DNA from: Setoptus koraiensis
Lineage: Eukaryota > Animalia > Arthropoda
Direction of reading: 5' to 3'
DNA: 64,000 nucleotides
Assembly: GCA_048013815.1 (NCBI GenBank)
Contig: CM106586.1
Span: 6,200,001 to 6,264,000, forward strand
Positions 8,818 through 46,900 of this stretch are shown here, piece after piece; positions within the stretch are counted from its first letter, which is position 1, and each line of letters opens with the position of its first letter. The notes below the pieces were generated by a model. That model had not been told where the DNA came from. It did not search any database and saw nothing but the letters and a program-made list of their open reading frames with translations. Made by a program: the position numbers and the translations under genes.

Positions 8818-9477
8818 CTCGGTGTGTTCCGACTCTTTCAATGAACAGCCGACAGCTGAACATGCGCCACCGTACTCTCCGATGGTTCCACAACATAGAA
8901 ACATAACACCTAATTCAAGCAGTGAAAACCATGATCAACAGAATGCGCCCGGACAACCTGAAAGAGTTGAAAGTAGACGAGCAGGGTTACGTTACAAAGG
9001 GCCTGTTGATTATTATAAAGAGAGAATCTCTTATGCAGAAGCATTGTATGTGGAGGGCGAGGCGCTAATTGCAGAAGAACCCAGTTCATATAAAGATGCA
9101 ATGAGTTGTAGCGAAAGTGACAGATGGCTAAGTGCAATGCAAGATGTTGCTAAGAACAAAACGTGGGTTCTGTGTGAACTGCCTACAGATAGAAAAGCCA
9201 TAAACTGTAAATGGATCTTGAGAATTAAACGCAATAGTGATGGTAGCGTATCAAAATTCAAAGCGAGGCTCGTTGCATGTGGTTATTCGCAGCGATACGG
9301 TTACGATTATAGCGAAACTTATTCGCCCGTGGCCAGACTAGAGTCTGTTAGAGTGATTCTGTCCATTGCAGCCACTGAGAATATGGACCTATCGCATTTT
9401 GACGTGCAGACGGCGTTTTTGCACGGCAAATTAAAAGAGGACATTTATATGAAACAACCAGATGGTTGGTCTAATGA
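8818..9477 (+). mobile_element. Ty1/Copia reverse transcriptase N-terminal fragment (RVT_2), truncated after QPDG
   Basis: EPSSYKDAM, WVLCELP, CKWILRIK, FKARLVACGYSQ, DYSETYSPVA, FDVQTAFLHG, IYMKQPDG. Confidence 0.95.
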
Positions 9478-9631
9478 CATCCCATGCGCTCACAATAATG
9501 CCACTATCACACCAATGGTTCACTCACCTGCGATTAAGACTATCTTGTTGATTTATTATGCTCCGTTTGTTCTAAAATATTTGGCTTTTATTTGTATTGA
9601 AAAATACACACGACTTCACGATTTTAATTGG

Positions 9632-10771
9632 TCAAAAGAACACGTCACTTATCAATGGTTTGAAAATCGACTGGTTTCCTTGGTTCTTCCTATGGTTGAA
9701 AGCTTCTTTGACGACGTCAAACCTGATGACGTCTTGGCAAAATGGATATTTTTTCATGGCAATATCTTCTTGCTTTCTGAAACATCGCACAACGCATGAC
9801 AATGTCTGATCGGCGGCGCGTGGTAAACTCATTACTTTGGTGTAAGTGTCCATTGCATCTACAGGCACATTGACTAGGGAGCCTTTGATGAATTTCGAAC
9901 CGCGTGCCCACACTCTTTCTGAGGGTCTGTGCTCAGAAAGTGTGCTGAATTGTATAACCGGAGACACTATTATTTGTTCGATTCGATTAAGTTGGCGAAC
10001 AGACTCAGGTAAATCGCGGAATTTGAGGCCATTGTTCATGCACATCGGCGGGATCTGTGACTTCTTCAGATATTTGAAACAGGTAGTGCAGAGAATATAT
10101 TCAAAATCGTGTCTCGCAATCACTCTGTTAACCAAATCTTCGCCATACTTTCTGATCAGATCGTTTAATTCAAATTTTGTAGTATAATCTCTACGAAATG
10201 TTCCCGAGCAGCTTGCACAAACTCGACTGTAGTTGTCGGCTACGCTCGCGCGGGATTTCTCCATAGCACCATTTATTCTATCTTAGTGCAACTCGGAAAA
10301 TTCTTCCATATAACCGGGTTTTTTGCAGAGACGTAGTATTTTCATAAGATAAACACCTCGACGTTGAGCATTATCGTTGTCTCTACGAATTATCTTAGCA
10401 TACTCATCGTTCTCTTTCTTCAACTCACTTTCTCGGAATTTATTATTCAAATTGAGTTTTCGATGATACTCGTTATCTTTGGTGAGGAAATAATCGTCAA
10501 ATTTTGCGGGTGCCTTCACAGACCTCGTCGATCTTCGCAGATCGCTTGTTTGTTCATGTGAATTTTGGTCAACATCAGAATCTTTGGAAATGTTAGCCTC
10601 TTCATTTAGGGAACAACTCTTTTGTTCTTCTTTCAATTGATATTACTCTCTCCTACGAGACAAACGCGATTGATTATCTCCGTCGATATACCTTACGCGC
10701 TTTCTTTCTGATTCCGCAGCCCTTCTGGCAGGATCTAATCGAGAGCGACGTTTTCTCTCTGCAGCCATCAT
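9632..10771 (-). pseudogene. Helitron/Helentron-type ORF, N-terminal half with DUF6570-like domain; Rep and helicase parts absent
   Basis: Three listed ORFs are in one frame, separated by single TAA codons (10643-45, 10283-85). Contains C-x2-C...LCTTCFKYL..PPMCMNNGL..LPESVRQLNRIEQIIVSP...KGSLVNVP, typical of the region preceding Helitron Rep. Confidence 0.75.
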
Positions 10772-26792: not shown

Positions 26793-27090
26793 CTGAGATG
26801 AGAGTGAGAAATGCGAGGAAAATTTTCTCCTGCGTGAGGGCATCTCACGTGCAGCCGTACACAGAGTGAGACGTCTCATAATGCGCAAACATTTGTTTAT
26901 GTTTTCAAAATCTGCGCCAACTCCAGTCGCAAATCAGTGCTCCTAACTTGGCCGTTCAACCGCTTTTGACAGGCGATCCAGATTGTCAGACAAAACAGTT
27001 TACATTTTTGCATGTGCCATCACGGCCGTTTGGGCGAAATGTTATATTATTCAGAAACATTATCTTGCATATATTTCAAAGGCCACTCTA

Positions 27091-29817
27091 ATGGGAGTCC
27101 ATGGACTTTGGTCAATCCTGGAATCCACCGGCCACCCAATCAAATTGGAGGCGCTTGAAGGCAGGGTTCTAGGTGTTGACGCAAGCATTTGGTTGTATCA
27201 GTTTCTGCATGGATTCCGCGATCGAGATGACGGCCACAAGCTAGGCTTGTTCAAAAGAATAAGTAAGCTTCTGTTTTACAAGATCAAGCCAGTGTTTGTT
27301 TTCGATGGACCGGCAGCATCATTGAAGAAGCGTACATTGGAGAAACGTCAGGAGCGCCGCAACAAATACTTAACCAAGGCCGGTAAGCTCGGTGAATTGG
27401 ATTTTGAAATGTTCAAATTGGGAGAGAAATTGGAGGAGAAACTGGAAGAGAAATTAGAAGAGAAATTGGAAGTCTCTCCCCTTGAATGTGTTATAGAAGA
27501 GGAACTTGACGAGATACAAGACAATCAGCCTTACCTCGCAGATGAAGATATTGACTCTGAGGACTTCAATAATTTACCCGCCGAATTGAGACACGAAATA
27601 CTCACTAATATAAAAAATGCTAATCGCAGAACTTCAAAAATACTACCCGACGAAGCTAACAGCTTTTCTAGCGCTCAATTAGAGCGACTGAGGAAAAAAA
27701 GATCGGTGCAGGAAAAGATCGAAGAAGCCGAAAGAGATATACGCACATCCATTTCTGGCCACCACAATGACACCTCCATAGTTGAATCGTATCGTGTTCA
27801 CTCGGACCCTACATTACGTATGCTGTATTTAAAAAAGTTCAGTGATCAATCCAAGTCCATTAGGCATGACATAGCTCTGGAATCTGGTAAAGGAGCTGCC
27901 AAACTAGAATGTGAAAAAGAGGAAAAAGTTGATCTCACTCCAATCAAAGCGTCTTTGAAGGAATATCTCAGTTCCGCAGAGAAGCCCGACTATAAACTTA
28001 TCGGAAAAAAATTAGCCAAAAGTGCTGTGAAACTTCAGCCAAAAATTAGCCTATCACCAAAGTTAAGTGATGATGATTCCGATTCAAATGAATCCTTCAT
28101 CTCCGTCGAGGAGCCCCCCACACAAGAAGTCACAAATAACGATGATGAAAATATACAAATTCTTAGTGAAGATGACAGTCAAACTAGCGCCCCGTCAGCG
28201 AGTTGTGATGAAAATTCAAACAAACCCACCACGTCGTCCCGAGTAAATGACCATACTATAATTATCTCCAGCGACGATGAGACTGACGAAGATGGAGCGT
28301 CAGCTGCCGGACTAAAGAGGCCAGTGACTTCGTCTCAACCGACTGAATTGTTGCTGCAAGAACCTAAGAAACAGCTGACTTTGGAGTTAATGGAGGAATT
28401 AAAGCGGAAAGCAAATCGCGGTGAGCGTCAACTGGATGATGCACATGTATCTGATAGTCAAACTAGCGCCCCGTCAGCGAGTTGTGATGAAAATTCAAAC
28501 AAACCCACCACGTCATCTCAAGTAAATGACCTTACTATAGTTATCTCCAGCGATGATGAGACTGACGAAGATGGAGCGTCAGCTGCCGGATTAAAGAGGC
28601 CAGTGATTTCGTCTCAACCGACTGAATTGTCACATCAAGGACCTAAGAAACAGCTGACTTTGGAGTTGATGGAGGAATTAAAGCGGAAAGCCAATCGCGG
28701 TGAGCGTCAACTGGATGATGTATCTGATAGTCAAACAAGCTTCCCGTTAGCAAGTTGTGATGAAAATTCAAACCAACCCAGCACGTCATCCCAAGTAGAT
28801 GCTTCTTCGCAGCCACCCAAACAACTGAACCCAGAGGAACTAGAGGCATTAAAGAAAAAAGTAAATCGTGATGAGCGTCGTGCTAACTCGATGACCGATA
28901 AAATGATCCGCGAAAGCAAAGAACTACTGGAGCTTTGGGGAATTCCGTATATAGTAGCTGCTAGTGAAGCTGAAGCTCAATGTGCAACACTGGAAACACT
29001 CAAACTCACCGAAGGAACAATTACTGACGATAGTGATGTTTGGTTATTCGGTGCCCGTGTAGTGTATAAGAATTTCTTCAGCGATCACAAATATGCTATG
29101 CAGTTCAAGATGACTGATATCGAGCATCATATTAGGCTAGATCGCGAATCGCTAATTTGCATCGCCATGTTAGTTGGTAGCGATTACACCGACGGAATAG
29201 ACATGGTGGGACCTGTCACAGCTTTAGAGATATTGAGTGAATTTCCCGGAAAGAAATTAGAACCTCTGATCGAATTCAAAAAGTGGTGGACTAACTGCAA
29301 GGCTAGTAAAGATAGAATTCCTGGCAATAAAAAGCGCAAAAGTTTCACCAAGTTAAACTTACCTGAGGATTTCCCTAGCTGGGTAGTGTTCGATGGTTAC
29401 AGGCAACCATGTGCAGATGATTCGGATGAACGATTCACATGGGGCATGCCTCAATTAGATGAATTACGCGAATATGCTAGACGAAATTTTGGTTGGGATA
29501 CAAAAAAGATCGACGATTGTTTATTGCCTGTGATGAAAAAAGTCAATGATAAAAGCGCGCAAACAAAAATAGACATGTTTTTCTTCAGAACTGAGGCTAA
29601 CAAAAACCCTTCGCTGTTCCGTAGTAAGCGTGTCAATAAGGCCCTCGAAGGTCTCGCGGACAAAGGTGGGAAAGAATCAACAAAGGCACAAACCAACAAG
29701 AGTAGGAAGAAAGACACCAACGAGGAGAAAAGAGGAACTACTACTAGAGGAGGTCGACGGGGAGGTCGTGGCAAAACTCAGGCCAAAAGTCGAGGAGCAT
29801 TCTCACGTGTGATCTAA
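27091..29817 (+). CDS. ERCC5: XPG/Rad2 structure-specific endonuclease, 908 aa, intronless
   Basis: MGVHGLW, VDASIWLYQF, PVFVFDG, UBM-like DFNNLPAELRHEIL, EAEAQC, TDDSDVWLFG, LVGSDYTDG, PIP box QTKIDMFF. Catalytic acidic residues are intact. Confidence 0.97.
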   Translation: MGVHGLWSILESTGHPIKLEALEGRVLGVDASIWLYQFLHGFRDRDDGHKLGLFKRISKLLFYKIKPVFVFDGPAASLKKRTLEKRQERRNKYLTKAGKLGELDFEMFKLGEKLEEKLEEKLEEKLEVSPLECVIEEELDEIQDNQPYLADEDIDSEDFNNLPAELRHEILTNIKNANRRTSKILPDEANSFSSAQLERLRKKRSVQEKIEEAERDIRTSISGHHNDTSIVESYRVHSDPTLRMLYLKKFSDQSKSIRHDIALESGKGAAKLECEKEEKVDLTPIKASLKEYLSSAEKPDYKLIGKKLAKSAVKLQPKISLSPKLSDDDSDSNESFISVEEPPTQEVTNNDDENIQILSEDDSQTSAPSASCDENSNKPTTSSRVNDHTIIISSDDETDEDGASAAGLKRPVTSSQPTELLLQEPKKQLTLELMEELKRKANRGERQLDDAHVSDSQTSAPSASCDENSNKPTTSSQVNDLTIVISSDDETDEDGASAAGLKRPVISSQPTELSHQGPKKQLTLELMEELKRKANRGERQLDDVSDSQTSFPLASCDENSNQPSTSSQVDASSQPPKQLNPEELEALKKKVNRDERRANSMTDKMIRESKELLELWGIPYIVAASEAEAQCATLETLKLTEGTITDDSDVWLFGARVVYKNFFSDHKYAMQFKMTDIEHHIRLDRESLICIAMLVGSDYTDGIDMVGPVTALEILSEFPGKKLEPLIEFKKWWTNCKASKDRIPGNKKRKSFTKLNLPEDFPSWVVFDGYRQPCADDSDERFTWGMPQLDELREYARRNFGWDTKKIDDCLLPVMKKVNDKSAQTKIDMFFFRTEANKNPSLFRSKRVNKALEGLADKGGKESTKAQTNKSRKKDTNEEKRGTTTRGGRRGGRGKTQAKSRGAFSRVI
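28174..28810 (+). repeat. In-frame tandem repeat within the XPG spacer (279 and 273 nt units plus a partial third)
   Basis: DSQTSAPSASCDENSNKPTTSS...ISSDDETDEDGASAAGLKRPV...KKQLTLELMEELKRKANRGERQLDD; units start at 28174, 28453 and 28726. Confidence 0.97.
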
Positions 29818-29875
29818 CGTGCGGGCAAACTTTAGACAAAAATGTTAGATGTGATGTATATGGTGCAATTTTATA

Positions 29876-30535
29876 TATGTATATATATTTATATGTTTAG
29901 GTAGATGATAAAACAAGAGACGGCAAAACGATAATAAAAGTGTCGCACACTTACTGCATCGCATATCACACACTGTTGGAGTATAAAGTGTCCCAAATAT
30001 GCACACACCGCAATCGGTTACTCAGGGTACTAGTCGAATAGTAACTTTTGCAGATTCATCATTAACTATAGTTTAATAACTTTTTATTCCATCCTCTCCA
30101 ACGGTCGAGCAATTTCCCTGAAGCGGCCAGCGCAAACAGCATGTGAGAGAGCAGCCATATATCAAATCTTCTCTAATTGCTCCATTAGCTAACATTAGTT
30201 TGTTGTCTTACTTATCAACCGCAGTGGTAGCAGCGAAAACTGCAGTGAGTAATCATTTCGATTTACGAGAAATACAATGTACTAATGAGCGACAACGGGC
30301 GATTCAATCATCATCGACACAGACTTCAACGAGAGGCAACCAATTGTCCTTTTTTGCGTGTGCCCGATCACACCGACCATATCTCACCGAACTCATCACA
30401 CGAACCTTATCATACCGACTAGATTATACCAGTTAGGTCGCACCGCTAATCTCAAAAGCACCTAGACAAACATTGTACACGTGACCAGATCAAACGTGAT
30501 CAATTATGCGTTAATTCGCTGATGTTGTCTTGACT
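29876..30535 (+). repeat. Second copy of the tetraspanin-upstream block, with no tetraspanin ORF after it
   Basis: Matches 22487-23075; carries an ~80-bp insertion at ~29975-30055. Confidence 0.9.
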
Positions 30536-33500
30536 AATGGCACACTTTAGCCAGCAGATGTATCAGCAGATATTCGAGCATATTGAGACATATCAGCTGA
30601 CGAATGGGCAGAGATGGTGATGCGTTTGCTGTTGTTACATTGACAGCTTACGTCAATCAAACCCCCGTCGATATGTGATCCCTCGTATCTGGCTCTCTGG
30701 TCGAAAATCCGACGTCTCATGCAAATCTCAGATGAATCGAAGGTCGAAAACATGTTTATAACATTGTCACTCTGTTAGTTGGGCCAATGGCAGTTGCCTG
30801 GTCAGTAGACATTGATAGCAATAGGCTAGTAACGATGAAATTCGACACCCAGGAGAGGAACATTAAATGTCAATGTAACAACGTTAAGTTTGCTTCCTTT
30901 CCATTGTAGTTCACAATGTTCGTTGGCCTTGTTAGCGTGCTCTCAGACATAGCAGCACCCAATGCTTTTATGCAACTCAGGTGCCCTGACTATAACCTGA
31001 CTATAACCTGACTATAGCCGCCGACTATAGGAAGAACGGAACAGCTACCGACACACACAAATGAGCACCACGAGCAAACAAATCGTTTAATTGCATAACA
31101 TGTCTATATGTCTCGTTCTGTAGCTAACCACCACTAGTCAATGCGAAAAGAGGGCCGCTAAAAGAAGCTACTGTATAGTTTAGGTATGGCTGTTTGCTCT
31201 GTGGTATGCCAACGACGAGCCCTCTCATTAATAGCCTCCAATATGATTAACTTAAATTGCTAAAATTAGATTAGGCCAGAGTTTTAGTATCGAGGCGAAT
31301 GTGACAATTTCGCGTTTGAAATTCGACGAAAAACAAGCAAACAAAATTGTAATTTGACTCCGTGGGTCTTTTAAGTCGGGCGACACAGTTTTCTTGCTTA
31401 CAACATGGTTATTTTCGTAAACAACATGCTGTCTGTCGTGCACTAAGAGGGTAAACCTCTTTCTAGTTATGTATGATTAAAGGTTATTATTAGTTCGTTC
31501 AGTTTATATAGTCCGAATGAACTTATAATATCAAAAGTCGATTACCTGTCTGGCTAACTCTTTTCCCATTCAGTTGCACTAGGAGGTGCTGCTGTATTTT
31601 GACTGACTAGTCAAATTGGAGTTAATGTGGATCAAATAGATTAGTGGGTGGCATCAGTGACGGACGGATGTTGTCCCGAATTGCCATTCGAGGGCCAAAA
31701 AAAAAAACAAACCGATAACAATATCTCTTCGATGCTTCCAACAACTGATTTCAAGTCACTTGCTCAGCAGGTGCAATAGACTGCCTAGAAGCGAGAAACA
31801 GATTTCGATATTTGTACTTTTATCACTGGAACTTTTCACAAAGCCCGATACAAAGTGTGATAAAATAGGAGGAATCTTCCGTTGGAGCCTCATCTCTTTT
31901 TCTCGACTCGATCACTCTTATGAAGTGTGTCAAAATCAGCACACTCCATCGATGGTACCGATTTTGTCCTCGAGTGGCGCTGTGTCTTGGACTGGTGAAC
32001 AGATTGATCGCTCACACTGCGCGCCTGCGTACTGGACCGAACAACCTTGACATGGGCGCCCCACTGCAACTGGGTAGCCCCGTGTGAACAAGTGAAATAA
32101 AAACGCTCCCATGCGGGCCCTACCGGCAGGACATGCTTTTGCGGAGCTGAAGTGAAACTTTTCGCGCACTCGCCGGTACAAGCAGTATCAGTCAATCATA
32201 TTTGTCAGTTTGTCATGCGTTTAGATATCAACCATTTATATCATCATGTATGCTGGCTTTTGCCCACTGATCAATCAGGCCGATAAGAGCGGAAAACACT
32301 ACTGTCGACATGCACAAATGGGATAAAAGTAGCTAGTGACACTGACAAAATTTGTTCAGAGGTGTCGTCGCATGGCGTCGCTTACGAACGTGGCGGAAGT
32401 TGGAGTTTTCACTTGTGCAAGCGCCAACATACACAAGTGATCTATGCGAATTTGGGGCGCCAATGTCGGGTTTACAATGACAGAGGATGAGAGAAACGTG
32501 GGCGATAATAGTCAAGTTTTATACATGTCCGCCTGCCCAATGGCAGTTGGCAAGTTGTTGCGAAGCGTCGTGCTATTATTGCTATTGTGTTATTATTATT
32601 ATTAATAATAATAATAATATTATTGTTGTTGCTGTCGACGTATTTGTTTAAATTATTGACCGTGTCACTTTGATGATAAACAATGGTGAACAAACACAGA
32701 TGATACAACATACACACATGTACTCGAGGCTTATCTCAAGTATCCCAATTAAGATAAGACGCCAGCTGTTGGTGTATCCAGTTGGCAAGTGAGCCGCTTC
32801 TTCGAAAGCAATCGCTAACAATAATAATAAATCCGTCTCTCCCTCTCTCACTATTGCCAGTGATGCTAGTGGTGGTAGTCCTCAATTTGAGCGCTCAGCC
32901 TTGATTGGTCCCTTGATGGTGGTGATATGTTATCGACACTTTGTAAGTCACTTTGTAGCGTGTGTTTACTCTGTTTAGTAATAATCAGTGAGTTTGCATT
33001 GATGTGACGAATGAGACAACTCGATTTAGTCACGATTCTGTCAGCTGCGACTCAATCAATCTGTTCACTTCTCTGTACAATGATTATCAAGGAGAGATTA
33101 CCATTGGCTCACTTTATATAGCCAAAAGTTAACAATTTCAATTTTACTGTATCTAACCGAGCGGAACTCAGGCCAGAGAGACGAATGTTTCGGCGATTGT
33201 TTTCCACTGTGAGTTCCACACTGTCACGTGGATCGGAAACATTCCACAAATATCTGGGATTGAAGGAAAAGATTTCCATTTTGATGATCAGTACCAACAT
33301 GGGTATCAAAATGATGAATGGCTCGTCTCAATGTGCCCATCCAGCACTTTAAGCGAAATCCTTCTTGTGCCACCAAAATGTCATAAAATGCTCACTTGTT
33401 GTGTATGTTATATAGTAACTCTGCGACTTTTGGGAAAAATTCTAAAAAATTGAGAGAAAATCGCGGTAAAAAGAAACTTCTCTACGTCTCGTTGGGCACA

Positions 33501-35401
33501 CCCGAAACAAACTCCTTTTTATCGAGCCAAGACACGAGTTGATGGTCATGTCATAGATCTATAATATTGTTATGTTGTGCATAGTTTATGTCAGTCTCCT
33601 AGAACACTCCAATAAAAGTAAGAATAACTTTTCTATATGAACTTGATGAATTCGTAATGAAGCAAAGATGACGAAGAAAAGAAAATATAACTCCTCTGGC
33701 CCCAACGAATCGCATGCTCACAATTGAAGAAAACCACAACTTGCATTGTACCCTTCGACTATGCATACTGAAATGATTCGTTGGGATCGGTAGATCGTGG
33801 CTTTTTCTCACACATTCCGATTCGTTCATTCGAGAAAGCTTGTGATGTCATGAGTTTGATCTAAATACATATTTGCAATGTGTTATGGGTATCACCAGTA
33901 ACAAATTGTGTAAAAAATAGAAATTGTTTCCACTAGTGACTGATGCGTTGTAAATGTATTAAATTGGCTATGGGTGTTTGGATTATTATCGCTAGTAAAT
34001 GATACCATCTCAGCGCGTAGTGAACAGGTGCCTGTGTGTTAATCTTGATGAGCCGACCATTGATGTTGCTGTCGAGATTGTGTCGCCCAACAATTAATAT
34101 CTGAGCATGGCAAACCAAACTGAAGCTGCCACGCAAGACCCATAATGGATTCCTGCCAGCCTATCTGTAGCTGTAACCATGTCTTTGAAAATAGTTAGTG
34201 TGGTGGCGTGGTTAAATGTAGCCGACAACTGTTGCGACTAGCTCATTGAGTATGCATACTCATACATAGACTCATATTAAATAGTTTGTTTGTCTGTTAA
34301 AAGTAATATATAACTTTTAAACAAACTGGCCCTTCTAGTATCTCCAGTGTCTTCCTCAATTCACTCGCAACGAACGAAATCAATAACGCATCCAACAGAG
34401 GGAGAGAGAGAGAGAGAGAGTGCCTTCGGAGGGTGATGTAACGAGTGGAGCTTTTTTGCTTCCTCAGTATGGATTGCATGGTATGGAATTCACACTGACA
34501 TAAGAGCGAGACAGTGAAAACACACAAGCATTTCTAATTATATTAGACACTTGTTAGTGTATTGGTATAGTACTAATACAATATTAGTATGGTACGGATT
34601 GCCAGATAGACAGGCTTGCAAGTGTTAGAGCAGGCTCGGCAAATCCGGTTTTCAGCCACAAATCACAGATTGAATATCATATCACACCGCGTTTATACTT
34701 TGACAATGCCAGTCTTGTTTATTAGCTTTATGTCAGTGGTTTGTGTGAGTGAGCTGTATCAGCTGTTGCTGTCAAGCTGTTGTTTACAAGTCGGCCGACT
34801 TTTAAATGGGATCGTGTGACTCTCTGTCTGTCTGTCTAATCCAGTTCATTTGGGTAACTTTGACAAAGCAAGCAAATCTGTGCAGTGCAGTTGACAACAG
34901 CGAGAGAGAGAGAGAGAGAGAGAGGTGCCATATTGTGTGCTGGCTGCATCGGCAGCGTCTGGCCCAGGTGAGGGGAAATTTATTGATCACTAATTATGAG
35001 CAGAGCGATATCAAGTTTGTTAGCAAGTGCGTCTCTCTAGATCTCGAGGATACGTTTGATAGGGGGCGCATCTCGCGACAGATTGTGTGCTGGGTGTCGC
35101 TGTTGTTGTTGCTATTGTTTGATTGCAACATGCAACAAATAATTTGGTTAGTAAGTAAATATTTTTGGCTGGTAAGATGACTTATTTACTGTTAGAGTGT
35201 GTTGTTGTGGTGGCCGCGACAACACTTAATCTAGCCAGATACATTGTTGAAATGATTGCAAGTTATGTAAAGTGTCACAACGGGCGCACAAACAAAGAGC
35301 TGGGACGTGTCAACATTATCCATATATTACACATGTACATGTTGCACAATTATGGCATTGATGATACAACAATTCGTCTAGCCAACAATTTGTCTAGCTA
35401 A

Positions 35402-35403
35402 CG

Positions 35404-35436
<33 letters not shown>
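35402..35436 (+). repeat. (AAC)n microsatellite
   Basis: Direct reading. Confidence 0.95.
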
Positions 35437-35437
<1 letters not shown>

Positions 35438-36738
35438 GGCACTGTACTGTATTTTGTTGCTTGCTGCAGCGTGTGCGCATGGGCGCAATCAAACAGCAAC
35501 AGCTGTTGCTGCACAGCGATAAGCAAGTGTCGGGGGGCGAGGTGGCGCTGCTCGCGAGAGGGGAACCAAAGGTAGAGGTACGCTGGTGGTGGCAACAGCG
35601 CACTTATTATTGTATGTGTACATTGTATAGCGAGCATAGCACTAGTAAATTACTAGTAGTTACAGTGTTAGCAGCAGCGATAGCGACTGGTAAGCGAGTC
35701 ACGAGAGCGAGTGAGTCGGCAGATGAGTCACTGGCTTAGGCCCCGCCCGCCGGTGCGTCAATCAATCGAATTGATCATTTTGACGACTCCATTAGCGGGC
35801 TCAAGGCGGCCGACGCCGATATCTTGTCTGGCATCTCTGGTAGTTTGTCAAGTTTGTTGGTGTGATTCGAAAGTGGTTATAGCAGCGACTGCACACACCA
35901 CAATATTCAATATAGTATTTGCAATGCATTACATTGAGCGCAGTTGAAGTGTGTGTGTGTGTGTGTATGCGCTCGCAATGCGCTGATGGCTCGCCGATAA
36001 ATTTAAGTCTCGTGAATAGCGACGACAGCAAGCAGCGATGCTTTTAGCAAAGGTTTGTGCGTATAATGCGCTATAATAGTATACAGAGAGTGTTACAGAT
36101 GATACAGCCAGCGAGCGAGCGACAATATTTGTGCGAGCGTATTCAAGCTTTTTCAATATGTTGTGTGTATAATAACGACAACGTACATGTATATTGTTTT
36201 ATAACTGATACTTGCCAGTATCAACTTGCAACAACCTAACTGAACTGAACGTACAATACACGTCGTATTAGCACGTCGTCGTTAAGCGTACAGGCAGCTA
36301 ACGTAACGCGAGCACGCGTTTCAGTTGATCTCAATTGTTGCTACTGAGCATTCGATCTGAGCACCAGCGAATTGTTGCATTTGCAGTTCGATTTGCCACG
36401 TTCGATTCGCCACGTTCGATCTGAGCACCAGCGAGCCAGTGCGAGGCGCCCATTGTGCGAGGCCGTGTGCGCATTGTGCATCAACAAGCGGGCCAGCGCC
36501 AGTGCCGCCGCCGGCCACACCAACCCAAACGCGCCCGAACATGCCGCCAACAGCTTAGACGCGCCTCGACATGCCACACACTGATATATTATCAATTATT
36601 ATCACAATTATTATTGCAACTCAATCGCTGGGCCAGCAAGCAACAATCACTCAATTAGAATTAGAATCAATTTGCCAACTGTCTCAGCTGAGACAAACCA
36701 GCTGAAATTAATTAATTAATACCGCTCATTAGGCCACC

Positions 36739-36837
36739 ATGATCAAGTCGGGCAAGCGCAACGCGTGCCAGCGCTCTCTGGGCACCGGCACCGACACTCA
36801 GCCACTGCACCACCAACTGCAACAGCCCTACCAACAA

Positions 36838-36875
<38 letters not shown>

Positions 36876-39800
36876 ACAACAACAAATGCATCAGCAACAA
36901 CAACAGCCACAACAGGTGGAACCCGCCAACAACAACAATAGTGAGGACCATCGCAAGCAGAACCATTGCGACATCGAGAAGAGAAGGCGCGACAAAATGA
37001 ATCACTACATCACTAAATTGGCCTCCATGATACCCTCGTGCACGAGCATGCCCTGCAGACTGGACAAATTGACTGTGTTAAGGATGGCGCTGCAACACAT
37101 CAAATCCATTAGAACGTCCCTGTGCGGCTTCTCGTCGTTCCATCTCAGGCCCTCATTTCTGTCCTCGGGCAATCTACTTAAGAATTTGATATTGCAAATG
37201 GCCGCACAGGAGGTAGAGGACAATTTGTTTATTGTTGTATCATGTGATAGGGGCAAGGTTTTGTTTGTCAGCGAGTCATCTAAGGACGTTCTATTCTATG
37301 ATCAGCGCGAGCTCATTGGTCAGAGTCTGTTTGATATATTGCACAAGGAGGACGTGGCCAAAGTGAAAGAACAAATCAATTCAAGTGTTCCACCAAAGGA
37401 GATGCTCGTCGACTCTAGGACATTGCAACCGGTGAAGGGGGTGCGCCAAGCGATGCTTAAATCATCAAACAATCATCAGTATGCCAATGGTTCCACTCCT
37501 CAGCCAGGTTCCAGGCGCAGTTTCTTCTGTAGAATAAAGACTGGTCATTTGCCAAACACCAACAATAGCTACAATATTAAGAATACTAATAACAACAACA
37601 ACAATATTGTTATTAACAACAGTGACACTAACAACAACAACTCAACTGCTGCATATTCCGCAAATCAGCAGAATCAACGTGCTACATCAACGGCTCCATC
37701 AACAAATCACAAGATTATAAACAAATCAGCAACGGCAGGCGAAGAAAATTTACTAGTGCATTTGAGGGAAGAGGAAGCGCCAACTAATCACAAGCAACAT
37801 TGTCAAAATGATCGACTTCAGTCAACCCATTCCCAACGAGTCAACAGATCTTTTGTGGCGGCCGCTAGAAACAATGTAAATGGAAACAATGATAGTAACA
37901 ATAGTGGTAACAACCATGATAATAATAATAATAATAACAATAATAATAGTAATTTAAAATTTAAAAGCTCTAGTAACAACAATCAAGGGACAAATCAACA
38001 ACAGCACCAGCAACAACAGCTCAGGCAAAATGTTGACTCTATACAAGATATTGTCCAAAACAATCAACCCCTAGCATTGATAACAAATTCACCAAATACA
38101 ACAGCCAACAACAATACAAATAATACTAATAATAACAATACTAAAAACAACAGATTCTTGTCTAGAAGGGGTCACGCCAAGTACATTGTGATGCGATGCA
38201 CTGGATATCTCAAGTCTGTTACTATTAGGAACGACGACGACTTTTTTGACATGAATGAATTCGACGGATATGAAAGCGAAAACGATTGCACAAATGAAGA
38301 GGACGGAGAAACAACCAAATGTAGATCAATCAATTGTCTTGTTGCAGTTTGTCGCCGGGTGCCAGTAGATAAAGATTTCAAACCGGATAGACCTATCACA
38401 TTCACGTGCCGTTATTCAGTTGATGGAAAGTTTGTTTTTGCTGACCAAAGAACAACCGTAGCTCTCGGTTATCTGCCCCAAGAACTTGTTGGTACGTCTC
38501 ATTATGAGTATTGTAATCCGGAACATCACAAGATTGTGTCTGATTGTCACAAACAATCGCTGCAGAGAGCCGAGCCCGTCTCATCCGATGTGTATCAATT
38601 TAGAAGAAAGAACGGATCATATCTGTGGCTCCAAACCAGATTGAGGAGCTTTAGAAATCCCTGGACCAAGTACATTGAATTCCTCATAGCCACCCATACT
38701 ACCGCCGAGGAAGTTGAGCCAGCCCACTATAGTCAAGGTTGTGTACCAACAAAATTCAATCAAGATATTACGGCGGCCCAATCATCACAAATATCATCAC
38801 CATCGTCCTCATTTTCTTTGTCTATACCGTCAATGGGTAGCAAGAAATCATCATCACCATCATCATCATCTATTGGCAGCACTTATTCGGTGGATTCATG
38901 GACTCAAGATGGTGTATTCAAGATGTTGAACAATTCCTCACTGAAAGTGGAACGCGCAAAAGTGGGACAATCGATAGCTAAAAGAGTATTAGATTCTTAC
39001 AGAAAGCAAGCAGACTCTATTGGGGTTGCCAGATCGGCGAGTCTTGGCCCCTGTTCCGGCTCGTCGGGCGGTAACGGAACAGAGGATAGTAGCTACTCGG
39101 ATCCGCCATCTTGCTCCTCGCAATCGTCACAAAACAGTATAGCATCAACTGAACTTCAAATGCTATCCAATTACGTCGAAAGTGTTAACAACGAGTCCCG
39201 GGATATTCAAACAAATTCTAACAATCCCAATGCACAATTGTCAAACTCCTCAGCTAGAACTCAGACAACTAGCGCCAACATGGATATGTGTGATACTGAA
39301 TCGGGTTCATCTTCTGGTTATAACGCGTCATCATCTTCTAGATCAGGCAGAGCTTACAGCATTACAAGTGCGACGAAAAGTTCAGAGTCTAGCGGAATTG
39401 GTAGTAGTCCCAACTCATCCGGAGGAGAAACAGGTGGATCAGCAAAGAATAAGTCAGCAGCAGGTCGACATTATCACCATCATCACCATCAACAAATTCA
39501 TCACCAACAAACTCACCGCCAACAAACTCACCACCAACAAACTCACCAACAACAAAATCACCTAATACAGCGAGAAATGGCTTTTATTCCGTCTGGTTGC
39601 TGTGGTTATTTTAACAGTATTGCAGGGCAGGCGGACGTTTACACCACTAACATTGGCGACAACAAAAGTAGTTGTAATCGAGCCACATCGCAAAATGTAA
39701 ACCATCACCATCAAGTGGCCATGTCAACATCATTGACTGTTGAAACTGGCAACAATGAATATGCAATGAATACCGGAAATGCCATTCAATCAAGTTCACA

Positions 39801-39981
39801 TTGTGTAGACACCAACTTGACCATGGCTCCCATAGATGCGGGTTCAGATCTTCACGACATAGGAGCTAATTCTTTATTTGAAGAAATTGACGACGATGTC
39901 CTACTTGAATACATAGCAAATCTGGATTCGGACACAGAATTTCCAAATCTACCAATACACATAATAAATGGTGAGATCTAA
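36739..39981 (+). CDS. cyc: bHLH-PAS clock transcription factor cycle/BMAL1, 1080 aa, intronless
   Basis: RKQNHCDIEKRRRDKMN...LDKLTVLRMALQH; PAS-A (FIVVSCDRGKVLFVSES, SRRSFFCRIK, TGYLKS); PAS-B (DGKFVFADQR, GYLPQELVGTS); FRNPWTK. These motifs fit CYC/BMAL1 rather than ARNT/Tango. Confidence 0.9.
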
Positions 39982-42900
39982 TTTGTTTTGTTTTCACTGG
40001 TGGAGTCTTTTCTACCACTGTTATCCTTTATGGCATCGCCTGTTTCCGTTCTATCATTGACCTTTACAAGTTGAGTGTCTGTGATTTGTTGATTGGGCGA
40101 TGCAACAACAAGTGTCGTCGGCTGTGAAAAGGATGATGAATTAGTTGTTGGCCTTACATTGGCGCTTAAATCGGATGACTCTAAGCTGCTCTCAATGCGA
40201 GATTCTGTTTTGGTTTGATTGTTGTCGGCCTGGCCAGACTTATTGGCTCTATCGTTAGCATAGTTATGACTTCCGTTGCTTGTTCCAGATATGGACGATT
40301 TACGTGATGACGATCCCTGGTTGTTTTTGGCGAGCTGCTCCTGTTTATCGGCGGCCCCCTCATCTGTCACACGATCGCCATGGCCAGACAGCTCATTTAT
40401 GGTGACCGGTTTCATCTTGATCGAATCGGCTTTCTTTTTAACATTGTCCAGCACAATATCGAGATTTCCGCCCGTCGACTTGAGGCGACGATGTCCGCGA
40501 ACTTGTTGCTGATTGTTACTGCTGCTAGATGAGGCCGAGTCTGACAATTTTGCTTTGTCATTTTGTTGCTGCGAATTCTTATCTAAGCCCGATTCGAAAT
40601 CATTTGCGTCTGTTTTGTTGATAGAGTCATTTGTCATATTTTTGCCATTTTTATTTGTTGTACCTTCTTTGGTTTCATCGAAACTCATTTCTTCTATTGA
40701 AGAAAATTGACTATTTGAGCTATTGCTATGTATCCTGTTGTTGCCCGTGGCTGATGTTTCCTTTGGCCGTTGTCGCTGCTTGCCCATCATCAGATCGCCA
40801 CTAGTATTATTATTGTTGTTGTTGTTTCCGGTGTTCATCACGTTCGTCGATTGACTATGAGGTGTAAAGTTCATAGCTGGCGTTGATACGGCCACTGTAG
40901 ATGCAAAATATTTACTAGGACTAAATCTTTTGTCTTGTTGCGACTGCTGTGATGGTGAGATGCCCAAGTCACTGTCTCTGCGTGTCACAGCAATAGTTGG
41001 CTGACTTCTGGTCTGTTCCACCTGTTGATTGTTGTCCATGGGGTGTCTAGATTGGCTATGATCTGTCAAATGAAGATGATTATTGCCATTTATACCCAGG
41101 TCAATGGATGTACCAATTGCCTGTATGTTTGTTGTTTGGGCCACAGTGGCTCGCCTATGAGACGGCCCATGAAGATGATGACTATCATTTCTAGTGAATT
41201 GCAACGAGTTATCATCTTCATCATCAAAATTTTCCACAATTTGATCTCTGGTGTCCATGGTAGCTGAGTCATCGCTTCTATAGATATGATCCGTGCTGCT
41301 AGAATTGTGTTGTGTATTGAAATTATTATCCGCTTGTTTGTGGTTGCTAGTTAAGTTAGTATTAGTTGTATTACTGTTTATGTTGTAATCGATAAATGTC
41401 GATTTGTTTTGATTTAAATCTCTGGCGCGTCTTGCCGATATAGAGCCCAATATATTGCTTAATTGATCATGCGAGCTGACATCAATGGCAACGTTGTTGA
41501 TCGATGACAACGAATCAACATTTATCACATACTTTTTGCCTCTGTTCATTTGTTGTTCCAATGTCATAGGATTAGCCTGACCATGGTTATAGGCACTTGA
41601 GCCATTTGGAGAGCAGAAACTAGTTAGTTTCTTGATACAATTCTTTGCTAAACTGTTTGCAGAGTTTCCGGCGTTAGTCATGTTGTGACGGCTACCCATT
41701 GAGTTGGGCAACAACAGTGCCGCCTGTTTCTCCAGCAACAATCTCAGCTTGTAGGGTGCTCCGCAATTGAGTATGTCTATGGCGTCTCGCAGGAAGATGT
41801 CGTCGAACGATATTGTGAGGCCCTTGATTTTATCGCCTGTTCACCATTGACATTTAAATGGTAAATAGTCGTGAATATATATAGTAAATAAAATTAGTGA
41901 ATCATAGCAATTTAAATGTGCCAATTATGCAAACTGCGTTGACTGCAAAATTAAATCAAAACCATATCAAGACTATGTGTATGAACTCACCCGCCTCAAT
42001 GCAGCCACTTTCGTTGGCGGGACCGCGCGACAGCACCGACCGAACAAAGATACCGTCGCGCTCATTGCCCGTTATGTCAAATCCGAGACCAATAAAATCA
42101 TGTCCGGTTATGTCGACAGCTATGAGATCGCCCTGATTAAACCAAATTGTTTGTGACAAGAATGGTTGATTAGCGCTGATTACTCATTGGCGACAGTTAT
42201 GTCATGTCGGTTACAGTTATGTCACGTGTAAGCGTTTACGATTGTGATCACAATTAACTGTTACTCACCTCTCTGGTGTTTCTCATTTGTCTGCCGTTGC
42301 CAGAGCCATCGGCGGTCAAATCAACAGCATTCAGGTGGCGTCCGTCAAGTTTGGCACCTGTCATTTTGTGAGATAATTTTGTCAGTGGTCAGATAACAAT
42401 AATAAATAGAAACATAATAGAAATATAAATAAATAGAAATATAAAAGGGACTTACCGTTTATTGTTAGTTCGTTGACACTAGACGACAATTGAACTTGAT
42501 GCAAATTGGATATATGCTCATTGAAATGATGATGATGATGATCGTGAGTGTGGGCGCCACCAACAAGCTGCATATCGGCTTGGCCGCTCGTTGAATCACG
42601 ATGATTCAACTGATGATGCAATATATGGTGGTGCTGATGATGATTGTGATTGTTGCTGTTGTGCAATGGCAAGGGCGACAAGGGCGTTGGCGAGCCGGCC
42701 AGCGAAAGATTTGATGGTGATTGTGTATCATTAATTAGTTGATCGTCCTTGAAATATGGATTGTCAAAAGCGTATTCATGTAAATGATCCGAGGTGTTAG
42801 TTGTTGTTGTGCCGCCGCTTAACAGAGCATTATTGTTATTGGCCCTTGATCTGGTTGATGTTGACTTCTGATGGCAACCATTAATAATATTAACGCCCGT

Positions 42901-43001
42901 TGTCTGGCCAACAATTGGACAATTGGATGACGATTGTGACAGGTCATGATGGAGGCGATCGTTCAATCGCATATTGTAGTGCTTTGTGTTCTTGACTAGA
43001 T
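39978..43001 (-). CDS. PDZ-domain gene (periaxin/AHNAK-type PDZ), 3' exons 43001-42456, 42357-42269, 42132-41991, 41836-39978
   Basis: Spliced PDZ reads GLGFDITGNERDGIFVRSVLSRGPANESGCIEAG|DKIKGLTISFDDIFLRDAIDILNCGAPYKLRLLLEK; all introns are GT-AG and phase-compatible. Confidence 0.88.
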
Positions 43002-43461
43002 CTGTTACAAGTGCGATGAAAAGTGCGATTTTCAATAAGGGACACAATACAGACAAACAAAGACAGTTGGTCAGTGGGGCTATTATTGATTTACAATTTA
43101 CATCTAGTAATTTGATTGTTTAACCGTTTGCCATTTGCAAGTGCGGGCGTGTGCTATTCACAACAGGCGAACAACAGCCAGTGGGTGGCCAGACGAAATG
43201 GGTGCGCAAACGTTGGACGTGCAACATTGTTGTCGCCGTCCATTCAAATTGAGATTTATATTCGCATTGGGATTTATATTCGAATTGAGATTTGAATCTA
43301 AATCTCACAATTGTTGTCAGTTTGAATTAGAATTTAAATTTAAATAACAACTTGTGAGCATTGTTGTTGTTATTGTTATTGTGTGCCCGCAACAATGGCC
43401 GCGCCGTCACGTGGGCTCATCGTGGTCGAGCACAGTTCATTAGTGGGTTCATTCATCATTC

Positions 43462-43570
43462 GGTTGTATCATTTGGTTGTATCGTTTGGTTGTATCGTTT
43501 GGTTGTATCGTTTGGTTGTATCGTTTGGTTGTATCGTTTGGTTGTATCATTGGGTCGTATCAATCGGTTG
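43462..43570 (+). repeat. 13-bp tandem repeat (GGTTGTATCGTTT)n
   Basis: Direct reading, ~6-8 degenerate units. Confidence 0.9.
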
Positions 43571-43856
43571 TGTCATTGGGTTGTATCATTTGATCACGAG
43601 ACGAGATTCAGTGCTGACACAAGTAAGCTATTGTGTGAAAGTAAGCTCACGCGTAGTGCATGTGAGACAATGGCGCAAACAAAGACATCCGAATAGCTGG
43701 CGAGCGAGCCCAGGAAAGAGGTTAAAATTAGAGCTGGCCCACAACAACAGCGACAACAACAGCGACAACAACAGCAACAGCGACAACAACAAATTCGCAA
43801 ATTTGCTGTTGTTGCTGTTATCGAGTTGGCCAACGGTTGCACTGCAAAGGTTGCAC

Positions 43857-43932
43857 TGCAACGGTTAGACTGCAACGGTTAGACTGCAACGGTTAGACTG
43901 CAACGGTTAGACTGCAACGGTTAGACTCAACG
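43857..43932 (+). repeat. 14-bp tandem repeat (TGCAACGGTTAGAC)n, ~5 units
   Basis: Direct reading. Confidence 0.9.
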
Positions 43933-46900
43933 GTTGCACTGGGCAGGGTAGGAGTGTGGGCACAAGTATGAATTGTCGGTAACAAGTTGCTGGTAAGTAA
44001 AGTGATATTCTCACTCACAGATGACACCTATCGATTGTGTGTAAACGGCGAGTTGTGTTGTAACGGACGCCAGTGGGCCGTCGCTTCAAGGCTCGGCTTT
44101 ATCTACGGCTCTCTGTTGGCTGTCGCTTTGTTGCCTGGCTGGCTCGTTGACTCGTTGCATTGCTCACGACAGGTGAGTCAAATTGCGTTGGCTGGCATGG
44201 CGATGCGAGAAGCAGCGACATGTGCGTTTGTATCGGATTTGTTGTGTGTGTTGTGGCAGCGGCACGGTTATTTGTTGTTATGCAACTCATAGCAGCGGAT
44301 AAAATAGAAACGGACGGCACACAATTGTCTAGCTCTCTCATATTAGCTCACACACATGACAGGTAGAGGCAATTTAGCATGTGCATTTGCTTATCGTGTG
44401 TTATCATCATCATCATCATCATCATCATCATTTGTTGTATCATGTTATTATTATCGGTGTCCATTACGAGAAACACAATCACTGTTACTGTTACTGTTGC
44501 TAACTCACTAACAGTGTGTGACTCACACACTGATATCATGCAGCTATTCGTATCGATTCTCACGGAAGGGAACGAGCGGCCCACTGACACAACACACAAG
44601 CTCATTCCCATGACAACAAGCCCATCGATTGATTGCAATCACCTGTTTTTTACTATATCTGGTCTGGTTGCCGTTGTCGGTGTTGCCGGCGCTCAGCTGT
44701 GATTGCCGGTCACTTGACAGTTGTTTGCGTGCCAACAACTGCTGTCAAGCAGCGCCTGTCAAACAAATCAAGGTCAAGCTGCTCTCTTGTTAGGCCTGAC
44801 AGTTGCCGCTGACCATTGATAACTGACCAGTGCATTATACAGTGCCTATCAGTTGCAGTGTGTGTGTGTGTGTGTGTGTGTGTCAGTTGTCAGTTGGTCA
44901 GCTGGCCAGCGCGACAATAATTGAGTTATCAAAGTGGCACAAATATTGTTGTTGCTGCTCGTTTGAGCACAATTAATTTGTGTCAGTTCATGTCTCATAT
45001 AACGATATCACACGATGTGCGATCACTAATCATACCATGTCGCTGTTCAACAACAACAAGCGCTCATTTAGCAACATGGCACCACAATGTGCTGTAATAG
45101 CTGCTATCACGGCCACCGTTAATCATATTGGCCAGTGGCGATATTCCGGCCAGTGAGGCGAGTCGCAAAAAGTAGATCACACACTGACAATGACACACAC
45201 AATTTATAACTTGCAACAACACACACACACAAGTGGCACAACAATGGTCGCCGGCGTTGAGTTGCGCCGTGAATTCAATTAGTTGTCTTGTCACTTTTGG
45301 CCAACTTATGGCCAACTTATGGTCAGTGCATCCATCGTGCAGATGATGGATGCATTGCTTTATCGTCCAGATAAAGTGGCGCGTTGATCTTGCTGCAGCT
45401 TGAGCGAATCTCGGCCGATGTCATCTCATGGCAAACAAACAAACAACACAACTGACCGTGTGACAAGCTGCCTGCGACAACAGGCTGGGCGTAGCTCGCT
45501 ATTCATTATTATTCATTATTATTTATTATTATTTATCCATCAGCGTTAACGAAATACCGCAAACGTTTCCACAAGTGACACACGCAACTGACAATTATCA
45601 GCTGGGGCGCCCGCTCGAGATGCATTCATATAGAACAAGTGTAACTGTAACAAGAGTATGTATAACACACGACAACGGCGGCCTCGTTGCAGTTTTAAAT
45701 TCATGGCGACTGCGATTGTTTGCTCGCCCCTGCAACAAGTGCTCGTCGCATCATTTCGAGAACTCGACGCAACTTGTTGCCCGCTGTCACACAAGACAAG
45801 CTACGGCGTTGCGCAACAGATGAAACAAATGAGATCACGATCGTGCCCGTCTCTCCAAACGGCCGCTCTCACAGGCTGTTGTTATACATAGATTATCTAT
45901 AGATAGCACATAGCAAACACACAAATATGAGAACGGGCCTATTGTCAATTGTTGTTGTTGCTGCTGTTGTGCGCATACTTACTGTACATGCAACAACGGT
46001 AGCCGACACAACGGTTAACCTGATTTCTGCCACAAACTGAAGCACATTTATAGCGTTTACAGCATGCTGCATAGCGTGCGTCCAGTTATGATGACATAAC
46101 ACAGTTACGTAACGAGCGACGACCACGACGACGCTGACGACGAGAATGGCAACGGTAAATGGTGCAATCATTATAGTATCGTCTGTATTTATGTGCATGC
46201 ATCCTGCAGACAAATACAGCTATGAGATGCTGATCTAGATCAAATTGAATTGTCAAATTGAATTGTCAAATGAGTCGCGATTGCCGTTGGTGTTATAATT
46301 GTCAAGTGATGATCAATCATTTGACAACTGTGACTCTGTTGCAACCGTCAATTGGTTGCTTGCCCGACACGCTTGTGAGTAACAACGGTGTGAATGGCAT
46401 GACGACATAGATTGCACTGGTTGCATTTAGCTGAGCCATTTATCTCCAGTGGCCACTCGTTGTCGGTGTGGCCGTTGCTAGCTGCTCTATCACTGATGCA
46501 CACTGTCGGCCAGAGTCTAGCGGCCGCTGTGTGACACTTGACGTACACACTGGATATCCGCACTCGATATCCGCACTGGGTATCCGCTCTTGTGAGTATC
46601 CGGTCTGGATACTAGACGCACTGAACAGGATTAAAAAAAGACCTTGCGCTGTGTGACAATTGACAGTGCGAAAAAATTAAATTGTCACAAGCAGCTGACT
46701 GAGTGACAGCAACTGCTCTGTGTCAGTCAACTGTCAAACTTCAACTTGTCCAATTATTTTCATTATTTCATTAGCCTCAACCACTCACACCCTGTCAGCC
46801 AGTCGATGCCAAGCGCATGTTGCGTCCGTAACTGTCGTTACGTAACACATACTCTATTAAGATCTTGTTACGTAACACACACACACACACACACACGCTT

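Follow-up and report, generated by a model that had tools for sequence, protein, structure and literature searches.

How can two protein-coding genes on opposite strands end on the same bases, and where can the 3′ ends of their mRNAs then be formed? This question is raised by a locus of Setoptus koraiensis at which a cycle/BMAL1 orthologue (gene cyc, protein CYC) on the + strand converges with a gene for a PDZ-domain protein on the − strand. The locus lies in a stretch of 64,000 nucleotides (assembly GCA_048013815.1, contig CM106586.1, positions 6,200,001 to 6,264,000), referred to here as the window, and all coordinates are positions in it. An earlier sequence-only reading of the window proposed that the two genes have overlapping stop codons, and CTAA was read directly at 39978–39981, where the two stop codons overlap with two bases in common. 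The coding parts concerned are the following:

36739–39981, + strand: cycle/BMAL1 orthologue, 1080 codons in one uninterrupted frame closed by TAA.
39978–39981, both strands: overlapping stops, TAA at 39979–39981 on the + strand (cyc) and TAG at 39980–39978 on the − strand (PDZ gene).
39978–41836, − strand: last exon of the PDZ gene (1.86 kb), with the C-terminal third of the domain, a Ser/Asn-rich tail of about 580 residues, and the TAG.
41991–42132, − strand: PDZ-domain exon, with the first two thirds of the domain, followed by a GT donor at 41990–41989.

The identity of the + strand gene as cycle/BMAL1 was confirmed by Pfam domains, by a match to the BMAL1 structure, by database matches, and by a tree. 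Its start was set at the first ATG, at 36739, and further exons may lie upstream; as called, cyc is a single 3.2-kb exon. The bHLH domain of CYC occupies residues 72–124 (PF00010, 48.1 bits against a cut-off of 20.7), and PAS-B occupies residues 555–658 (PF14598, PAS_11, 73.6 bits; PF08447, PAS_3, 63.2 bits). PAS-A is covered by the alignment with the BMAL1 structure (residues 70–269 of CYC against 11–194 of the chain), the Pfam matches of PAS-A type being below the cut-off, and the two PAS domains are kept apart by an Asn/Gln-rich insert of about 250 residues. Against solved structures, CYC scores 267 bits with BMAL1 and 188 bits with ARNT. An exact look-up of the protein matched no record. 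Its top database matches are thirteen long proteins of eriophyoids (gall and rust mites), one of which is an annotated protein of Fragariocoptes setiger and another of which is wrongly labelled as coming from a plant; beyond the eriophyoids there are hundreds of matches, and those with names are nearly all “protein cycle” of insects and chelicerates or ARNT-like protein 1. A quick tree, which included no ARNT sequences, places CYC inside the eriophyoid clade and outside a 12-member clade, with Fragariocoptes closest at 48% identity.

The assignment of a PDZ domain to the − strand gene was also supported. The domain is interrupted by an intron of about 150 nt (GT donor at 41990–41989, AG acceptor at 41838–41837), and the PDZ-domain exon is 60–94% identical to its orthologues at four loci of other eriophyoid assemblies (L009–L012). 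The gene was searched exon by exon, without a joined spliced protein, and the exon piece 41959–42183 with its intron-split domain scores 22.8 bits with PF00595, the cut-off being 23.2; relatives in which the domain is uninterrupted pass this cut-off (P0142 with 32.6 bits, P0123 with 25.0 bits).

Whether both coding regions truly reach the CTAA can be judged for each gene separately. For cyc, the evidence is provided by the C-terminus of the protein, which is common to eriophyoid CYC:

39883–39978, + strand: acidic C-terminal motif DDDVLLEYIANLD... followed by the last 15 residues of CYC.

The pattern D(E/D)DxLLEYLA..D is present in 13 of 13 eriophyoid orthologues, which stop 15–21 residues beyond it (15 in the window), so the cyc stop stands at its ancestral place. 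The motif is located at the position equivalent to the BMAL1/CYC transactivation tail (BCTR, ...DFSxLPWPL), a likeness that is positional only; in the alignment, Glu-Phe-Pro-Asn-Leu-Pro of CYC resembles Asp-Phe-Ser-Gly-Leu-Pro of the canonical tail, and a BLASTP comparison of the CYC C-terminus with the Ixodes tail returned no match. For the PDZ gene, the evidence is provided by a sister species, represented by a 6.7-kb contig of a Logan assembly (L009) with the same arrangement of cyc and PDZ gene, the called genes overlapping by four bases. The − strand frame 39981–41840 is open for 620 codons, and its counterpart in the sister species (P0121), the only close relative found in an exhaustive protein search, is 81% identical, collinear over 620 of 620 residues, and has the same end point. 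Indels within coding sequence all have lengths divisible by three, and dN/dS of the PDZ exon is 0.18 overall and 0.27 over the last 100 codons. These in-frame indels, the low dN/dS, and the collinear sister frame together argue that the exon is coding up to the TAG. In the sister species, the junction reads CTAG, by which the cyc stop changes from TAA to TAG and the last Asn of the PDZ protein changes synonymously from AAT to AAC; both stops survive.

These observations bear on the reading in which one of the two gene models is mistaken and there is no transcript overlap, either because the PDZ tail is untranslated down to the TAG or because cyc lies within a PDZ intron. The tail is of low complexity and gave no Pfam match, as such a reading would have it. 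Against it stand the 620-codon frame, open and collinear in the sister species with the same stop, the in-frame indels, a dN/dS of 0.27–0.29 over the last 100–200 PDZ codons, and the agreement of the CYC C-terminus with its orthologues. Nesting of cyc in a PDZ intron, by which the PDZ transcript would splice out before the junction, was rejected; the 7 kb to the left of cyc (29818–36738) hold no noteworthy − strand ORFs, and the PDZ frame is kept to its stop. As both frames are coding up to the shared stops, this rival is disposed of, and we consider an error of this kind extremely improbable. The comparisons thus place both genuine coding ends at the common CTAA, and the proposal that there is no spacer between the genes is upheld by the sister frame and the cyc orthologues. 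A third frame over the junction (− strand ORF 39866–40027, open in both species) was also considered and rejected as non-coding; it has seven residue changes between the species, four of which arise from substitutions that leave the CYC or the PDZ protein unchanged. Metagenomes were scanned for the junction by an exact 28-nt pattern and, guided by protein, for DNA of the same or a close species, and both scans were blank.

Because the coding regions abut, any 3′ UTR of either gene is antisense to the coding sequence of its partner. An overlap of the two transcripts would thus follow from the gene ends themselves, provided that both genes are expressed, and with the hexamers proposed below the mRNA overlap would be roughly 100–150 nt. 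The candidate signals for 3′-end formation are as follows:

39963–39968, + strand: putative cyc poly(A) signal AATAAA, in the cyc codons Ile-Ile-Asn, at −18 from the stop.
39982–40014, + strand: putative cyc cleavage region and downstream element, G+T-rich, whose antisense encodes the last 11 residues of the PDZ protein.
39873–39878, − strand: putative PDZ poly(A) signal AATAAA, 100 nt past the PDZ stop, antisense to Ser-Leu-Phe of cyc.
39583–39588, − strand: second AATAAA, a possible distal PDZ site, 390 nt past the PDZ stop.

The + strand hexamer and the proximal − strand hexamer (TTTATT on the + strand) were found where the sequence-only reading had placed them, as was the T-rich tract after the cyc stop; the 30 nt past this stop (39982–40011) are 60% T and 83% G+T. 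The hexamer at 39963–39968 is the sole AATAAA or ATTAAA on the + strand between 39700 and 41886, and after the cyc stop that strand has neither AATAAA nor a one-letter variant for 719 nt, the next canonical hexamer being at 41887. The hexamer at −18 is therefore the only nearby candidate for cyc, and a very short cyc 3′ UTR is favoured. For the PDZ gene, the distance of +100 is comparable to +91 and +116 at two other genes of the window. Hexamer positions taken alone are weak evidence. On each strand of the window, AATAAA occurs 0.63 times per kb, which gives a chance of about 2% that one falls within the 30 nt preceding a stop and of about 6–8% that one falls within 100–130 nt past the other stop; in cyc orthologues elsewhere, the position of the poly(A) signal is too variable to be informative. 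The case is strengthened by the 719-nt emptiness of the + strand and by the retention of hexamers and stops at a dS of about 0.65: the sister species keeps all three AATAAA hexamers, and that at 39873–39878 is set in an 18-nt invariant context.

Further evidence comes from the pattern of substitution around the junction, measured in one species pair only, the window and L009. Background divergence is considerable, with dS 0.63 in cyc and 0.65 in the PDZ exon, a dN/dS of 0.09 in cyc, and introns that are 55–58% identical. Against this background the junction is contained in the following feature:

39895–40014, both strands: conserved block of 120 nt, centred on the junction, with one substitution.

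Substitutions near the junction are at 39888, 39894, 39981, and 40015. In 60-nt bins, 39900–39959 is 100% identical, the best of the 5.4-kb alignment, and 39960–40019 is 95% identical, tied for third. The last 28 cyc codons are identical, the next-longest run of identical codons in cyc being 12 and the longest in the PDZ exon 21. When the states of silent sites were shuffled, a terminal run of this length arose in 5 of 100,000 permutations (p = 5e-5), and one of this length at any position arose about once in 100 shuffles. None of the last 19 synonymous sites of cyc is changed (0/19), against 44% elsewhere, where about 8 changes were expected (probability about 1.5e-5). Beyond the stop, the tract 39982–40014 is invariant, and conservation falls off at 40015. 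These comparisons indicate that the junction is real and under selection and that the selection acts on more than the protein sequence of CYC. Both proposed transcript ends fit the extent of the block: a near-zero cyc 3′ UTR agrees with it and with the sole available + strand hexamer, and a PDZ 3′ UTR of about 100–125 nt, antisense to the CYC C-terminus, agrees with it and with the proximal − strand hexamer.

The constraint could also serve a single transcript, with the block needed by the cyc mRNA or by the PDZ mRNA alone, the neighbour incidental, and the function other than 3′-end formation. Options of this kind are a binding site for a microRNA or an RNA-binding protein, a translation-termination context, or an alternative splice donor at GGTGAG (39970–39975). 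Other animals have synonymous constraint elements where coding regions end, which lends this reading some plausibility; GGTGAG is present and invariant, and the synonymous identity of cyc is raised already from about 39720, beyond the need of the proximal PDZ hexamer. However, the block is centred on the junction, reaches 33 nt into the end of the PDZ coding sequence, and stops at the expected limit of a downstream element; the orthologues of cyc end at the same place, so that a further exon is not expected, and no candidate downstream cyc exon was seen. RNA structure is not significant on either strand (z about −1), by which a structured RNA was rejected as the cause of the block, and no Rfam family was found in 36000–44000. 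A function confined to one of the two mRNAs is thus judged improbable.

We consider it probable that the locus is a zero-spacer convergent pair, restricted to one lineage, whose dual-use bases are kept by purifying selection. A rearrangement or deletion in the common ancestor of S. koraiensis and the sister species would have created the pairing, and the abutting genes would then have forced each signal for 3′-end processing into coding sequence. In this layout, cyc would use the AAUAAA in its own last codons, with cleavage within about 35 nt past the stop, and the G/U-rich tract guiding this cleavage would double as the last 11 codons of the PDZ protein. The PDZ mRNA, in turn, would run about 100–125 nt antisense to the C-terminal codons of cyc and use the AAUAAA located there. 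Nearly every base of the junction would then be coding on one strand and serve 3′-end formation or UTR on the other, and because each base would have two jobs, about 120 nt would be frozen, the synonymous sites of cyc included. We infer the usage of the hexamers and the positions of cleavage from the sequence; on the same footing, the dual-use layout appears to be the most economical reading of the constraint, and the data are explicable without a dedicated cross-regulation of cyc and the PDZ gene. Dual use may nevertheless fall short of explaining the degree of conservation, given that invariance over 85 nt is rare in ordinary 3′ UTRs.

The age of the pairing was estimated from other eriophyoids. 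Approached from the cyc side, five species (L001–L008) have other downstream neighbours, none of which is a PDZ gene; these include Cu/Zn superoxide dismutase, D-tyrosyl-tRNA deacylase, and unnamed ORFs, and the called genes are 0.5–1.7 kb away from cyc. Approached from the PDZ side, two further species (L010–L012) have the PDZ orthologue without an adjoining cyc. The pairing is therefore present in the sister species and missing in seven other eriophyoid species, by which an ancient pairing of cyc and the PDZ gene was rejected; on the loci compared, the pairing is lineage-specific. Very short distances between genes are a known trait of eriophyoid genomes, the median intergenic length in A. 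lycopersici being 538 bp (PMC7738191). The window itself is not extremely compact here, since 7 kb upstream of cyc are free of ORFs and remnants of transposons occur in it, and owing to this limited compactness, compaction pressure alone is a weak cause of the zero spacing.

The sequence-only reading went further and suggested that the obligatory sense/antisense pair could couple the expression of the two genes through transcriptional collision or dsRNA, which is speculation. In its general form, the overlap would be a selected regulatory device in which convergent transcription, or a duplex of the cyc mRNA end with the PDZ 3′ UTR, couples the output of cyc and the PDZ gene by interference, RNA masking, or small RNAs; perfect complementarity, or the control itself, would then be what selection preserves in the frozen 120 nt. 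The synonymous constraint lies right at the junction and exceeds that in the rest of cyc, the arrangement has persisted over a dS of about 0.65, and there are precedents: antisense control of a clock gene by Per2AS (PMC8168560), and the 3′ cis-natural antisense pairs of Drosophila, catalogued as sources of endo-siRNAs, in which convergent 3′ overlaps give rise to siRNAs (PMC4079977). By contrast, seven other eriophyoid species do without the pairing, and the invariance is not specific for a duplex function; as the strands of one locus are always complementary, a duplex mechanism does not predict sequence invariance. Furthermore, A. lycopersici, the one eriophyoid studied in this respect, retains cyc, Clk, tango, and vri, but no per, tim, cry, or Pdp1 and no clear homologue of R2D2 or AGO2 were found in it (PMC7738191). 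The siRNA and clock-coupling parts of the regulatory reading are weakened by these absences, and the description of cyc as a core clock gene, also made by the sequence-only reading, is doubtful in view of this gene set. A regulatory device of this general kind is considered unlikely, and it is very doubtful that the frozen junction is a selected sense/antisense switch in which the level of CYC is set by PDZ transcription running into the 3′ part of cyc or by base pairing between the mRNA ends. Were the switch real, CLK-CYC would gain a regulatory input of a kind undescribed for cyc/Bmal1 in animals.

The dual-use reading gives the locus its main interest. If the proposed transcript ends are right, it shows how tightly an animal genome can pack two genes and what such packing costs, namely about 120 nt barred from even silent change. 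The junction would be a compact natural case for the coexistence of 3′-end signals and coding constraint, and it is a place where antisense interaction at cyc could occur, in a lineage with an apparently stripped-down clock; taken alone, it opens no long-standing question.

Among known systems, the locus can be assigned, from its two opposite-strand genes lying tail to tail and from the retention of this arrangement in L009, to the established class of tail-to-tail 3′ cis-natural antisense gene pairs. As in the Drosophila pairs, protein-coding genes lie tail to tail and their 3′ transcript ends must overlap, which in our case is deduced from the sequence; unlike in those pairs, the stops of cyc and the PDZ gene share two bases, and each UTR would lie in the coding sequence of the partner rather than UTR against UTR. 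Antisense transcription at a clock gene is also found at frq/qrf of Neurospora. The antisense RNAs of Per2AS and frq/qrf are non-coding, cover a gene of the negative limb, and have a measured rhythmic, antiphasic expression, whereas the partner of cyc is protein-coding, its target would be a factor of the positive limb, and the predicted overlap is confined to the very 3′ end. With Per2AS, the present locus shares antisense RNA over a clock-family gene, for which interference by convergent transcription was proposed (PMC8168560), the antisense RNA of the cyc/PDZ pair being predicted; a further difference from both systems is that the mite lineage may be without a negative limb altogether (PMC7738191).

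The intron-poor genes and very short spacers of the locus are like the genome streamlining described for A. lycopersici (PMC7738191) and an unidentified eriophyoid (PMC11879100), although the window is less compact than A. lycopersici. The median spacers in those reports are about 540 bp, and overlapping stops and poly(A) signals inside coding sequence are not described there (PMC7738191, PMC11879100). A further likeness is to synonymous constraint elements. These are coding regions in which an overlapping function suppresses silent change, and the run of cyc codons without silent change similarly lies at a coding end beside putative processing signals, although it is defined from a single species pair rather than from a multi-species alignment. 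Within the class of tail-to-tail antisense pairs, the features by which this locus is distinguished, as read from its sequence, are the shared stop bases, the predicted processing signals inside coding sequence, and the strong synonymous constraint.

All eriophyoid orthologues of CYC, the product of the cycle/BMAL1 orthologue (cyc), comprise 1150-1510 aa, whereas those of other arthropods comprise 600-850 aa. A poly-Gln run lies close to the N-terminus of cyc in Setoptus koraiensis, and a longer insert separates its two PAS domains. This insert and two features that lie beyond the cyc stop codon, the second of them within the convergent PDZ gene, are as follows:

37540-38200, + strand: Asn/Gln-rich insert of ~250 residues between PAS-A and PAS-B of cyc
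39998-40017, + strand: small hairpin just 3′ of the cyc stop codon, with a stem of 7-8 bp and a loop of 4 nt
41124-41290, - strand: second region of suppressed silent change, inside the low-complexity tail of the PDZ gene

In Fragariocoptes setiger (GCA_019968535.1), the deposited model P0001 (L001:8914-15666) joins the cyc orthologue and a downstream Cu/Zn SOD gene, and is named “Superoxide dismutase [Cu-Zn].” In-frame reading places the stop codon of cyc at L001:12853-12855, shortly after the conserved C-terminal motif, and the cyc-SOD fusion therefore looks like an annotation error. Another record, P0002, is deposited in nr as a plant protein, [quoted passage not shown]; in the phylogenetic tree it is nested within the CYC clade of eriophyoid mites, and it is probably mite contamination in a plant data set.

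In the sister species, two changes in the 3′ arm of the hairpin are predicted to convert G-C to G-U pairs in the + strand RNA; taken alone, the hairpin is not significant. Within the conserved stretch of the PDZ tail, synonymous identity between the two species is 0.85-0.93 versus a mean of 0.73, and 21 identical codons occur in a run starting at 41186.

Other features of the window include two XPG-type ORFs and two transposon remnants:

26983-29817, + strand: full-length XPG/ERCC5-like ORF of 944 aa
16398-16856, - strand: separate short ORF with the XPG N-terminal domain only (PF00752)
8822-9796, + strand: copia-type reverse transcriptase remnant (PF07727)
9635-10264, - strand: transposon remnant with a DUF6570 domain, of the kind that accompanies Helitrons

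The full-length XPG/ERCC5-like ORF contains an internal acidic repeat of ~90 aa in two or three copies. No ORF of note was found on either strand of the ~7 kb located 5′ of cyc (29818-36738). This stretch is unusually roomy by the standards of eriophyoid genomes, and could provide room for regulatory DNA or 5′ exons of cyc. The genome of the eriophyoid mite Aculops lycopersici is reported to be more streamlined (PMC7738191) than the transposon-bearing part of the Setoptus koraiensis window.
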